Source: Scyliorhinus canicula | Lineage: Eukaryota | Direction of reading: 5' to 3' | DNA length: 64,000 nucleotides | NCBI RefSeq assembly: GCF_902713615.1 | Contig: NC_052164.1 | Coordinates: 5,102,536 to 5,166,535, forward strand | Part shown: positions 38,637-58,716 of the stretch, piece after piece | How the letters are laid out: each line of letters starts with the position of its first letter | Position numbering within the stretch: the stretch's first letter is position 1 | Made by a program: the position numbers and the translations under genes | The notes under the pieces: model-generated | Told to the model about the DNA's origin: nothing | Database searches by the model: none | Seen by the model: the letters and a program-made list of their open reading frames with translations, nothing else

Positions 38637-38650
38637 GCGCCACCTACTGG
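38637..38650 (-). promoter_or_regulatory. CTCF motif between HoxB5 and HoxB6
   Basis: CCAGTAGGTGGCGC fits the CTCF core CCASYAGRKGGCRS exactly. Confidence 0.7.
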
Positions 38651-40748
38651 GCTCCGTCTGAATGACACGAATTAAACTCATTGCTGATCTATTAACATTG
38701 GTATATTGTTGTATGAATAATAAAACAACAAAGAAGATACCTTTGAAAATTACCTCCCTTAAATCAATACTTTTTAGTATTGTATTACATTTTCTTATAT
38801 ATCGTATTTAACTTTTGACAGTGCATTTCCTTTAAAGCGCTAAAATCAAAGATGCTGAACATAAAACGGCTATTCAATTATCTTGCAATTGAACTGGAAA
38901 TCACGTTTTATAGCTATACTTGGAGTGGAGCAATTTATTTCGTTTTTTGACCAGATACATTTAAAAACAATTAACTTGCCATCCTTGAGTAGTCAGTTAA
39001 ACGTACCCGCTTTCATCGACTTACGGTTGGTTCTGTCGATGTAAGCATTAATATTTGCTAAATGTTATCGTTCCTGCGTGTTTGCCGCACTGACATTCGT
39101 TCTGAAATATTTGCGAATAATGTATGCTAGTCTTTTCTAAACTTTGTCTCCAAATTGCATAGATTATTTCAAGACAAGGGAAGGACTACATTTTAGAAAG
39201 TTCTATATTGTACCTCGGGTGCACTCCGTGGTTTACTGGGATCCCACATCTCTTCTAATTAATGTGCTTTGAAGGAGTCTACTTAGAAAACACACGTTTG
39301 AACTACCTCCCCAATTCTGGGTTAATTGACTCTTTTTAAAATTACTATGCAATTATTCTGATTTAATTGCAGAATGAACAATATTAATGAACATTCCGGA
39401 GACACGAATCTTTTCGTCGGGGTTTTGTAAACAATACGCATAACCCCACTGTCGTTATAGGATCCTTTACCGGATCCGCACCACTCACCTCCCAGAGGTT
39501 TGGTGTATAATTAGCAGTGCGACACCAGCCCTTTTGGGGCACAATGTTTCTATTGTGTGAGGAAGGATTAAAGTTGTAATATGCTCTGTACAGAATGTGG
39601 TGGATTTTTGTGGGGCATGCATTGTTGTGGCAACAAGGAATTTGCGTTCAAACTCCTTTTTAAAAAAGTGACTCAATAAGACGGTGGCATGAGTGGCCCA
39701 TTTAGAAGGACTTGTGCCGAAAGGCACTCGCTTGATTGTGCAACGGAGAATAAAATAATTGAATGCAGAAAGGCAGTTGTTAAAAGCCACAATATATTGC
39801 CCTTCCTTTCCGTATAAACTGGTTGCGGATTTCAAAGATGTGCCTGGTATCATTAGCCAATAATGTTTCTATAATCCAGTCTGATTTTTAGAAGCGGGCA
39901 GTAAGCTGATTACTGGAATGAAATTTAAATTCGAAGGGAAATCATAGGGATAAATCAATTACCAGAAATTCAATGAGGACTGTCAACTTTTTGTTTTCTG
40001 ATAGATCGCAATCTACACTTAGCTAAGCTATGAGTGGCGATATTGAAAATTTGTCTTCTATACCAGGTCTGTTTGTAGAATTATCCATTGGTTTCCATGC
40101 ATATTATAATTCTTAAATTGAAAAATACACATAATGTTTTTAGAAAAACTTTTTTATTATCATTCCAGATAAGGACGCTCAGTTTTAAAAATTTATCACG
40201 CATGCTTCAGTCACATTAATTTAACAGAAAGCAAATAAAAAAATAACCTCTTACTCAATTTTAAGACATTTGCTTTTATTTTCCTCTCTCCATTACGAAA
40301 ACAATCCAAAATACAATATTTAGACCTCATTGTGTGATTTACACACACATGCACACACATCTCCACACACACGCACACGCACACGCATACACTGATAAAA
40401 TAAATCAAAAATAGTTGCTCACATTTCACATAAACGTACACCTTCATTAACTAGAGAGCTGAGACGAACTTCAAAGAAATCACAATATTGCAACAGCTCA
40501 ACTCAGATGCAGAATTCATGGAATACCCCTAATGTTTTTAAACTATTGACACCAATGTGAAACATCGCCTGTTTGGCTAGACCAAAGGAATGCATAACTT
40601 TATAATAAATCTGACAACAAATACGGAAATGTACAGCTCCACTGTTGCGCAACAGCAAACAAAATGTAAACTTTTAATATTCATTATTCATTTTTAATGA
40701 AAGAACTGCATAGCGTTCCCACTTCTTTCTTTTTCCCCCTCCTTGTTT

Positions 40749-41008
40749 TCATTCTGTTGATTTCTCTTCTGTTTCTTCTCCGCTTAATTGCGAAGAGCTG
40801 AGCAATTTGTTCTCTTTTTTCCATTTCATGCGCCTGTTCTGAAACCAGATCTTGATCTGGCGTTCTGTGAGGCAAAGTGCGTGTGCAATCTCTATCCGGC
40901 GCCTTCTGGTCAAATAGCGGTTAAAGTGGAACTCCTTCTCCAGCTCCAGAGTTTGATATCTAGTGTAGGTTTGGCGCCCGCGTCGTCCATTTGGATTAAA
41001 TGCTGAAG
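40749..41008 (-). CDS. hoxb6: HoxB6 exon 2 (homeodomain; missed by the ORF track); spliced protein about 230 aa
   Basis: Manual translation [89 protein letters not shown]. Acceptor AAG at 41011-41009 follows a (CT)n tract. Confidence 0.93.
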
Positions 41009-56500: not shown

Positions 56501-58702
56501 CTGTTTGTTCAATATTGTCCTTCTTTGTATTTTGATGTGTTTAATCTTTACCAGCAACGTGGTCCACTTCATGGGCGTGATTCCATGTTGTTCGAAAGTG
56601 TTCAAATATATTTCTTAAGCTTAATTATAAATGCATTTACATATTGTGAATTTGGTCTCTATCTCCGTAAACCTTTATCTCTCGCCGTACATAGGTACAC
56701 ACACACATATGCACACACATGCACCCATATTTGTAACACATTCCACGCACCTATCATGAACGTAGATACATTTAAATATACACATTTTAATGGGAGTTGC
56801 TTGCAAATGAATTTATAAAAGTAAACCTCCTTCCATGGAGCCTGTTTTCAAATGGAGTGCTTTATATATTTCTGTGCGTTTATTCTATGCTAGCAATTTG
56901 AAGCAGCTTCCTCAGATTTAATCACTCCATTCTGTTGAGAAATATTAAACAGCACAATGAGATAAGATATTATAGGTGTTAATACTGCCGCATTCATTTT
57001 ACTTTTCATTCATCCGTAACTGTTGACTGTGATAGAAAATGAGACGACACAAGTATTATGGAGATATTTATGTATCTGTATTATTATGTGTTTATGTATC
57101 TTAATCAGCTGAGATATTATTGATACGCTAATCAAACGCAAATAATCGCATTGGAATTTGATCTAAAACTAATAGAAAGCCGGGATCTTGTGTACAAGTG
57201 AAGATATGACCAACTTTGACAGATTTGAAATGCAAAACCACAGGCGTGTTATTTTTCTACTAATGTGCTGTATATAAAGGCAGAAAGGTGGACATCAATG
57301 GATGTTGACGCACGTAAGCACCTTCATCCAAATGCGCATAAAGGGCGCGGGGTTGCAATTGTGAAACGGTACTCTTGTTTATTTTCTATCTCCCTCGTCA
57401 CATGTCTTTATTGGGAGAACTGTAAAAACTTTAAAGAGCCCAAAATAAAGTATCGCCAAAATGTTTTACATTCGGCGTCCTCTTGGTAAATTCTGTTTTT
57501 CGTGAAATTATGAGCAACCTTGTATCTATAAACATGTGATATTGTAATAAAATGAGACATCGAGTAAGACTAAAATAGAAAAAAGTGATAGACACAGCGA
57601 AAGAACTATTCTATTGGAGTATAGCCTCGCCTGTCTTTGGATGAGATTCCAGTTTTGTTTTTACACAATGTTATAATCAGTTCAGTTCTGTGCAAATCCT
57701 AATCCCAGAGACTTTTGCATAGACCCTTGCAGTTGTATATGAAAAAGCCCTGAAGCTCGATTGAAGTACCGAGACAAACAGATAAAGGGGTGGTTACCTA
57801 CATTGTGCACGTTCTAAAACCGTGCAACAAATAAAATCGAAATCAATAACGTCTGAGAAAGAATCAATCAGCAAGACCTGGAAACAAGTCTGGAGGAAAT
57901 GTCCATGCGGATGGCTATGACACTGAAAATGTGTGTGTGTGGTTTGTTGAAAGGAAGGCAGCCTCACAAACAATAATCAATATATGTACAATAGTCCAGG
58001 ATGGATTCAATCGAAAAGCATATGCATTAAGATGTGAGATATGTAACGGGGTTGAAAGTTCATTTGGAGGCAAATCATCCAGAAATTTAAATGTGCATTT
58101 CAAATATGGTTCTATACAACCTATGTCTACACATACAACATGTTATTTCCCAATATACATATATTTTAAAATAATCAACTGCGAATCAGACACATAGTTT
58201 GTTAGACGTTTAGTTGTGTAAATGTATATTAAAAACTGCGAATACCGAGCATTTTAGATATCTCCCAAGCGTAGCATACCCCTTGATTTCTCTATAATGG
58301 GGTCGTTTGTATTTATTTACATTAGTCCCATATTGTACAATGTTTTGAAGTAAATGGACGAACTTATTCTTTCTGCTGTCTTTTCAGGCTTATATTGCAG
58401 TTTTAAAATAACAGAATTGCACAGAACGTGGCCCAGATAAAGACATTGAAATGAAAATAAATTTCAAATTAACATTACTGGCATCTTTCAGCGGAATACA
58501 GAGCAAAATAGTTGATTGGGGCAAAGCCTTGTAGGAATTAAAATATGTATATTTTATGTTCAAAGAGGGTGAAGCAAGAAAGGCAGGGGGAAGTGAAGTG
58601 CAAGCTGTGCGTGTTTTTTGATATTGGTGTTGTATCTACGGCATTCCAGATCCTTGTACAATAGCTGCAGAATTGGCATGACTGAGTTTTGGTGGAACAA
58701 TG

Positions 58703-58716
58703 CTGCCACCTACTGG
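58703..58716 (-). promoter_or_regulatory. CTCF motif between HoxB8 and HoxB9
   Basis: CCAGTAGGTGGCAG fits the CTCF core consensus exactly. Confidence 0.7.

Follow-up and report, generated by a model that had tools for sequence, protein, structure and literature searches.

The two identical 12-base sequences in the central part of this elasmobranch HoxB cluster are probably the cores of predicted CTCF sites belonging to a conserved central Hox array whose motifs point towards the 3'/anterior end. Both combine a match to the CTCF core with a 3'/anterior orientation, and both lie in the shared intergenic 5/6 and 8/9 spacers behind a CTCF-poor part of the cluster. This two-site arrangement adds one more ordinary example to a layout already known from jawed vertebrates and is not a shark peculiarity.

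The window, by which we mean the whole 64-kb stretch of DNA analysed, is an elasmobranch HoxB cluster extending from Hoxb3 to Hoxb9, as evidenced by a contiguous one-strand run of Hox3-9 genes, the presence of mir-10 between Hox4 and Hox5, and best protein matches to shark HoxB. The Hoxb5 protein is 98% identical to Hox-B5a of Mustelus asterias, and Hoxb8 is 92% identical to Hox-B8a of Cetorhinus maximus and 87% to its counterpart in Callorhinchus milii. All Hox genes of the window are on the minus strand, and the features relevant here are as follows.

1..38000, no strand: anterior part (Hoxb3, Hoxb4, mir-10, Hoxb5), without a CTCF motif of at least 12 bits
24991-25066: mir-10
37813..38349, minus strand: Hoxb5 exon 1 (ATG 38349; lower end approximate), from its open reading frame and hexapeptide motif
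38350..38600, minus strand: highly conserved Hoxb5 promoter / 5'UTR block, from the shark-gar alignment; also visible in bat
38635..38653, minus strand: site 1, CTCF-type motif AGCCCAGTAGGTGGCGCAC with an exact consensus core, 18.95 bits; directed toward the 3'/anterior end
40790..42035, minus strand: Hoxb6 (ATG 42035; homeobox around 40830)
45489..45507, plus strand: third CTCF-type motif GGAACGCAAGGTGGCAGCA in the Hoxb6/Hoxb7 spacer, 13.9 bits; antisense, directed toward the 5'/posterior end
48777..50903, minus strand: Hoxb7 (ATG 50903)
52460..53540, minus strand: Hoxb8 (ATG 53540)
58701..58719, minus strand: site 2, CTCF-type motif AGTCCAGTAGGTGGCAGCA in the Hoxb8/Hoxb9 spacer with an exact consensus core, 20.58 bits; orientation as site 1
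62957..63205, minus strand: Hoxb9 exon 2 (homeobox), stop at 62957

The plus-strand sequence GCCACCTACTGG occurs in the 64-kb window at 38639-38650 and 58705-58716 only (0.00 expected from shuffles), the same two positions and shared orientation that an earlier note on this DNA had given. It is the reverse complement of CCAGTAGGTGGC, a perfect CTCF core that fits the core consensus CCASYAGRKGGC at 12/12 positions. Exact matches to CCASYAGRKGGC number two in 64 kb versus 0.03 expected, and none of 100 shuffles contained two or more. A scan with a CTCF matrix, which the note had proposed as a check, ranks site 2 first (20.58 bits) and site 1 second (18.95 bits), these being the two best scores of the window, with the next at 13.9 bits; about 0.21 matches of at least 16 bits are expected by chance per window. 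The count matrix approximates JASPAR MA0139.1, and a separate IUPAC scan finds the same two sites. At both sites the CTCF motif itself reads on the minus strand, in common with the Hox coding sequences, and is therefore directed towards the cluster's 3'/anterior end. The exact consensus, together with the gene map, bears out the suggestion of strong co-oriented CTCF-type motifs at 5/6 and 8/9 of HoxB. The matrix scan found no CTCF motif of at least 12 bits within positions 1-38000, and the top motif of the shark b4/b5 spacer reaches 10.9 bits. This motif-free part fits the CTCF-poor anterior domain of jawed vertebrates (PMC5504073, PMC10335938). The b4/b5 spacer of Glossophaga contains a 16-bit CTCF motif (L007 14375-14393), which was considered as a candidate mammalian b4/b5 CTCF site and dropped, the motif being absent in Myotis.

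That the two sites share all 12 bases is most simply explained as two consensus sites carrying the same four degenerate bases, a coincidence of roughly 1-4%, and is no evidence for a special link between them. No flank similarity between site 1 and site 2 was found outside the 12 bases, and with one weak exception the 300-600 bp around each of the three sites do not recur in the window. The exception, seen when the window was compared with itself, is a 47-bp match (77% identity) between the flank of the 6/7 site and positions 1371-1415. A full-text literature search for the 12-mer gave nothing on Hox.

Site 1 precedes the Hoxb5 ATG (38349) by 290 bp, follows the Hoxb6 stop at a distance of about 2.1 kb, and lies at the 5' edge of the conserved Hoxb5 promoter / 5'UTR block. 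Its counterparts in gar, turtle, Xenopus and bat are all on the gene strand, 300-370 bp upstream of the Hoxb5 ATG. The 12-base core is the same as that of the shark in turtle (L003 9668-9686, CCAGTAGGTGGC) and carries one change in gar (L001 9680-9698, CCAGTAGGTGAC), and weakened forms of the motif occur in Xenopus (L004 9661-9679) and bat (L007 9634-9652; in the Myotis locus site 1 falls exactly in an assembly gap, and a different bat was used). On a uniform-background scale, the Hoxb5-proximal motif scores 16.0 bits in shark, 17.4 in turtle, 13.5 in bat and 11.6 in Xenopus. The identity in turtle and the single change in gar support the view that the motif dates at least to the jawed-vertebrate ancestor, and the species compared suggest that it has been kept for over 400 million years. 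Alignment to bony-vertebrate HoxB, another check named in the earlier note, thus recovered site 1 (in gar and turtle, more weakly in Xenopus and bat) but not site 2 (in hyena and the gappy tern assembly).

Site 2 has the Hoxb8 ATG (53540) 5.2 kb downstream of it and, on its other side, the Hoxb9 stop (62957) at a distance of 4.2 kb. In the hyena 8/9 spacer no same-strand motif was found as its ortholog, and the only decent CTCF motif there runs antisense and lies on the far side of a conserved element; no ortholog was detected in the tern, the assembly of which is gappy. The chicken 'HoxB8' primers, published as a CTCF-bound positive control in ChIP-qPCR, map within about 100 bp of the aligned tern position of site 2. 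An apparent enrichment of site 2 in four small runs (205-263 million letters; 88-100% of the region) was set aside, as a control 900 bp off was equally present (100%).

The third motif, in the Hoxb6/Hoxb7 spacer, is deeply conserved. Its core AG(A/G)TGGCAGCA is invariant in seven species (shark, gar, turtle, Xenopus, hyena and two bats), and in every one of them it is antisense to the Hox genes. The earlier note described B6-B8 as bracketed by the two 12-mers; sites 1 and 2 do flank these genes, but the note missed this conserved antisense site, which splits the bracket.

That CTCF occupies these sites in the shark, and that they insulate or time gene activation, we infer. An occupied CTCF site of 3'-pointing orientation would act as a temporary stall, such that activation of the genes behind it would be delayed and sharpened. 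Site 1, which is the first strong site on the way out of the CTCF-poor anterior part and matches the outward motif that Kadota et al. describe near Hox5 (PMC5504073), would divide Hoxb1-b5 from Hoxb6 and the genes behind it; site 2 would divide Hoxb6-b8 from Hoxb9 onwards. The 6/7 site is convergent with site 2, so that a small loop enclosing Hoxb7 and Hoxb8 could form between the two.

It is improbable that site 2, or with less likelihood site 1, is a functionless motif match, arisen by chance or specific to the lineage and without CTCF in vivo. Such a reading would account for the failure to find a site 2 ortholog in hyena and in the gappy tern assembly, and it draws on the roughly 0.2 matches of at least 16 bits expected per 64 kb and on the published caution that motif-only prediction is unreliable in Hox clusters (Kadota et al. 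2017, PMC5504073). Against it stand the two exact consensus cores, the strand and spacers of both sites, which are as the known layout predicts, and the retention of site 1 over the period suggested by the species compared. Further evidence comes from a close relative (organism B), which keeps 33% of sampled words from the site-2 region versus 16% for a control 900 bp off. Highly unlikely, in our assessment, is that site 1 serves chiefly as an element of the Hoxb5 promoter for another factor, with a secondary likeness to the CTCF consensus. Site 1 does adjoin the promoter / 5'UTR block (roughly 300 bp, about 90% identical between shark and gar), its conserved footprint continues 3' of the core (CGC..TCTGC), and in the tetrapod alignment a YY1-like AACATGGCG comes next; given this edge position, part of the conservation could serve another factor. 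However, the identity island is limited to the CTCF motif, with surrounding DNA otherwise unalignable, and the changes in gar, frog and bat mostly spare its most constrained part, AGGTG.C. CTCF sites near promoters are common. An outward motif near Hox5 has moreover been described as common to jawed-vertebrate clusters (Kadota et al. 2017, PMC5504073).

A further alternative, close to the view of the earlier note, is that the shark keeps strong ancestral 5/6 and 8/9 insulators which have been lost or weakened in mammalian HoxB, leaving shark HoxB unusually insulated and perhaps compensating for the loss of HoxC, a cluster that is lost or degenerate in elasmobranchs. The mammalian orthologous motifs obtained are indeed weaker, which partly favours that note: the Hoxb5-proximal motif falls from 16.0-17.4 bits in shark and turtle to 13.5 in bat (11.6 in Xenopus), and no same-strand motif was found in the hyena 8/9 spacer. 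Yoo et al. 2022 also report that skate, elephant shark and sharks lack the HoxA 5/6 CTCF motif (PMC9605692), in which case, with HoxC gone, HoxB could carry the sole 5/6-class site of elasmobranchs. Nevertheless, we regard this alternative as unlikely. The note gave mouse Hoxb1-b9 as reported to be poor in strong CTCF sites, a premise not supported by Lopez-Delisle et al. 2024, who report ten bound sites from Hoxb1 to Hoxb13; CBS5-10 lie in the b9-b13 spacer, where these six sites insulate Hoxb13, and CBS1-4 must therefore lie within Hoxb1-b9 (PMC11573545). The mouse HoxB layout has been described as conserved with other clusters (PMC8559674, PMC10335938), and Kadota et al. 2017 find the 5/6 and 8/9 positions in common among human, mouse, dog, opossum and chicken (PMC5504073), so the layout is not a novelty specially kept by the shark. 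Motif score also predicts binding poorly, as Kadota et al. themselves point out (PMC5504073), and the mammals compared number three, one gapped over site 1 and one sampled at 8/9 only.

The reading of both 12-mers as cores of a conserved central array has a bearing on its age. If CTCF binds these sites, they show at the level of individual bases that the central HoxB CTCF array is no younger than the last common ancestor of jawed vertebrates, the strongest evidence being the Hoxb5-proximal site and the antisense 6/7 site. So ancient an array would support the idea that Hox timing as elucidated in mouse is an old mechanism, which is already a published expectation; what is added is the exact placing of three candidate shark sites and no new principle. 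A bolder proposal, which we consider quite doubtful, is that the Hoxb5-proximal site is the only surviving 5/6-class boundary in the elasmobranch Hox complement, the mammalian HoxB copies having weakened as HoxA and HoxC took over the task. If true, boundary duty would be partitioned differently among paralogous clusters in elasmobranchs and mammals. For specialists the angle of interest is how the 5/6 boundary is distributed among clusters in a lineage without HoxC and reportedly without the HoxA 5/6 motif.

Among known systems, the mouse HoxA 5/6 CTCF site is said, in work attributed to Narendra et al. in 2015, to be one of the central directional insulators. Rekaik et al. 2023 describe central Hox CTCF sites as facing the 3' end and serving as sequential insulators (PMC10335938), and Amandio et al. 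2021 report a CTCF layout conserved among paralogous clusters (PMC8559674). The shark sites resemble the central sites of mouse HoxD and HoxA in being intergenic, central and 3'-oriented behind a CTCF-poor anterior part; they differ in that function in mouse was demonstrated by deletions (PMC10335938, PMC8559674), whereas the shark sites are predicted from sequence. The pattern of Kadota et al. 2017, with CTCF between Hox5/-6 and Hox8/-9 in jawed-vertebrate clusters, is likewise close to that of the shark, both having the 5/6 and 8/9 positions, the outward Hox5 motif and few or no Hox1-4 sites (PMC5504073). That pattern derives from ChIP-seq in human, mouse, dog, opossum, chicken and lamprey, whereas the shark sites are defined here by motif and conservation, and motif-only prediction in elephant shark gave few sites (PMC5504073). 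Shark CTCF ChIP-seq, from cloudy catshark and bamboo shark, is said to exist (Hara et al. 2018, as cited in PMC7471279). Within the same cluster, mouse HoxB has four bound sites in Hoxb1-b9 (of CBS1-10) and the shark three motifs, a correspondence at the level of the cluster (PMC11573545). Chondrichthyan HoxA, according to Yoo et al. 2022, keeps conserved predicted 7/9 and 10/11 sites in cartilaginous fishes but, in skate, elephant shark and sharks, is without the 5/6 motif, in contrast to the perfect 5/6-class motif of shark HoxB (PMC9605692). Finally, the first site in the four mouse clusters lies just upstream of the group-4 promoter (PMC8559674), whereas the first strong shark motif lies just upstream of Hoxb5.

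Judged from sequence, three CTCF-type motifs in this HoxB cluster are very probably genuine CTCF sites that belong to the conserved central array of Hox clusters; site 1 (Hoxb5|Hoxb6) is well supported in that predicted role, and site 2 (Hoxb8|Hoxb9) and the motif between Hoxb6 and Hoxb7 reasonably so. The seven homeoboxes of the window all lie on the minus strand and belong by sequence to groups 3, 4, 5, 6, 7, 8 and 9, a gap-free series known from HoxB alone among the Hox clusters. Hox-B5a of the shark Mustelus asterias shares 98% identity with exon 1 of the group-5 gene; for exon 1 of the group-8 gene, identity with Hox-B8a is 92% in basking shark and 87% in elephant shark.

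Genes and CTCF-type motifs in the window
23593, minus strand, Hoxb4 start codon
24991–25066, minus strand, mir-10 precursor between Hoxb4 and Hoxb5 (Rfam RF00104, 79.8 bits)
38349, minus strand, Hoxb5 start codon
38635–38653, minus strand, site 1, 290 bp upstream of the Hoxb5 ATG
42035, minus strand, Hoxb6 start codon
45489–45507, plus strand, third site, Hoxb6|Hoxb7 spacer
50903, minus strand, Hoxb7 start codon
53540, minus strand, Hoxb8 start codon
58701–58719, minus strand, site 2, 5.2 kb upstream of the Hoxb8 ATG and 4.2 kb past the Hoxb9 stop
62957, minus strand, end of Hoxb9 exon 2

The two identical 12-bp cores in the same orientation described by the earlier note were recovered by exact-word search and by consensus and matrix scans. 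The word GCCACCTACTGG has two exact plus-strand copies in the window, at 38639–38650 and 58705–58716, with none expected by chance, and its opposite-strand reading, CCAGTAGGTGGC, agrees throughout with the CTCF core consensus CCASYAGRKGGC. Scanning the window with that consensus returned sites 1 and 2 as the only exact matches (0.03 expected; at least two in no shuffle), and tolerating one mismatch added no further site. With an approximate CTCF count matrix resembling JASPAR MA0139.1, site 1 scored 18.95 bits and site 2 20.58 bits, followed by a next best match of 13.9 bits, while simulated sequence of the same composition yielded about 0.21 matches of at least 16 bits per window. Both sites occupy the coding strand and therefore point to the 3′, anterior end of the cluster. 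They have nothing in common outside the 12 bases. Given that both are true CTCF sites, two draws from the matrix would agree over the 12-base core with a probability of about 0.008, or about 0.04 if both are treated as perfect-consensus sites, and the identity of the cores is mildly unusual and no evidence of common descent or functional pairing.

Conservation around site 1 was assessed by comparing the Hoxb5 neighbourhoods of gar, box turtle, Xenopus tropicalis and two bats, of which Myotis was excluded owing to an assembly gap over the place. Every readable species carries a CTCF-type motif on the gene strand 300–370 bp upstream of the Hoxb5 ATG.

Site-1 motifs in other species and neighbouring elements
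L001 (gar locus) 9680–9698, gene strand, TTCCCAGTAGGTGACGCTC
L003 (turtle locus) 9668–9686, gene strand, TCCCCAGTAGGTGGCGCAG, 12-base core identical to that of the shark
L004 (Xenopus locus) 9661–9679, gene strand, TTTCCGGTAGGTGTCGCGG
L007 (locus of the bat Glossophaga) 9634–9652, gene strand, TTGCCGGGAGGTGGCGCGC
Window 38350–38600, minus strand, conserved block of ~300 bp upstream of the Hoxb5 ATG, ~90% identity among shark, gar and bat
L003 ~9690–9710 and L004 ~9683–9700, aligned to window ~38610–38630, YY1-like element

On a common scale, which differs from that of the window scan, these motifs score 17.4 bits in turtle, 16.0 in shark, 15.2 in gar, 13.5 in bat and 11.6 in frog. In the five-species alignment the motif forms an island of identity amid otherwise unalignable DNA, at the 5′ edge of the ~300 bp block (~90% identical between shark and gar) that is probably the Hoxb5 promoter and 5′UTR; this is the pattern that would be expected of a constrained binding site. 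About 10 bases after the core, turtle and frog carry a YY1-like word (AACATGGCG or AACATGGAG) where the shark has AACCTGGC.

The third motif, absent from the earlier note, scores 13.9 bits and is antisense to the genes. Its core, AG(A/G)TGGCAGCA, does not vary across the seven jawed vertebrates compared (shark, gar, turtle, Xenopus, hyena and both bats), in all of which it lies antisense between Hoxb7 and Hoxb6. Because it points to the 5′, posterior end, it converges with site 2, which lies 13.2 kb off on the far side of Hoxb7 and Hoxb8, and diverges from site 1. The proposed bracket around Hoxb6–Hoxb8 is thus more than one interval rather than a single undivided one. The same spacer holds a conserved element (46708–46921) about 1.2 kb from the motif, with 84% identity to 18348–18562 of the hyena locus L005.

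For site 2, the candidate correspondence with other species is positional. Shark and hyena 8|9 spacers share a 110 bp conserved element (L005 5267–5373 against window 59470–59362, 82% identity), which in the shark is non-coding and lies ~650 bp from site 2. No same-strand CTCF motif of at least 11 bits was found in the hyena spacer, the best motif there (L005 4350–4368) being antisense and on the Hoxb9 side of the element. Local alignment of 140 bp around site 2 to the hyena and tern spacers was no better than with shuffled queries, and the tern locus, whose assembly is riddled with gaps and homopolymer stretches, has no motif where site 2 aligns. For a ChIP-qPCR check in which samples enriched more than tenfold were kept, Kadota et al. 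(PMC5504073) made primers against a CTCF site predicted with JASPAR near HoxB8 of chicken. These primers map to tern ~5977–6041, ~100 bp or less from the aligned position of site 2 and inside the pair of anchors that flanks it in shark. An 8|9-class CTCF site thus exists in birds at about the place of site 2, which makes it a candidate counterpart by position. In a close relative, 33% of sampled words were kept in the site-2 region against 16% in a nearby control region. Four small public runs of 2021 (205–263 million letters each) contain 88–100% of the sampled words of 57050–57850 and 58300–59100, and their apparent site-2 enrichment, considered as a sign of binding, vanished once the control region was checked; since neither Hox intergenic stretch is remarkable in itself, such high coverage suggests that this locus was sequenced from clones or by targeting. 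CTCF ChIP-seq of sharks by Hara et al. (2018) is cited in PMC7471279.

The novelty argument of the earlier note was that mouse Hoxb1–b9 is poor in CTCF sites, so that the shark would have specially retained an ancestral layout. Mouse HoxB has ten bound sites from Hoxb1 to Hoxb13, six of them in the b9–b13 spacer (Lopez-Delisle et al., PMC11573545) and therefore four within Hoxb1–b9, which removes that basis and leaves the idea of special retention unsupported. Weaker mammalian HoxB sites are seen at the level of motifs, with 13.5 bits for the Hoxb5-proximal bat motif against 16.0 in shark and no clear 8|9 motif on the same strand in hyena. HoxC is lost or degenerate in elasmobranchs. Together with these weaker motifs and the HoxA 5|6 motif that a skate genome paper (PMC9605692) reports as missing in skate, elephant shark and sharks, this leaves room for boundary duty to be divided differently among the Hox clusters of cartilaginous fishes, which we nevertheless regard as improbable.

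The shark motifs instead fit the layout published for jawed vertebrates. Features that Kadota et al. (PMC5504073) name as common to them are motifs pointing outward near Hox13/Evx and also near Hox5, shared CTCF positions in the 8|9 and 5|6 spacers, and a scarcity or absence of sites across Hox1–4. Rekaik et al. (PMC10335938) divide the clusters into a CTCF-free anterior part, a central series whose motifs face the 3′ end and a posterior series facing the opposite way, an arrangement conserved across species and paralogous clusters. They show that the central sites hold up cohesin extrusion one after another, each for a time, and in this way set the pace of Hox activation; for all four mammalian clusters, Amandio et al. 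(PMC8559674) give an equivalent account. Within the 38 kb containing Hoxb3, Hoxb4 and Hoxb5, the matrix scan found no CTCF motif of at least 12 bits. The first CTCF site in mouse clusters is said to lie just upstream of the group-4 promoter, whereas the best match in the shark Hoxb4|Hoxb5 spacer (27666–27684, minus strand) reaches only 10.9 bits. In motif, strand, spacer and CTCF-poor anterior part the shark agrees with the known layout, and its HoxB motifs are a new instance of an already known arrangement.
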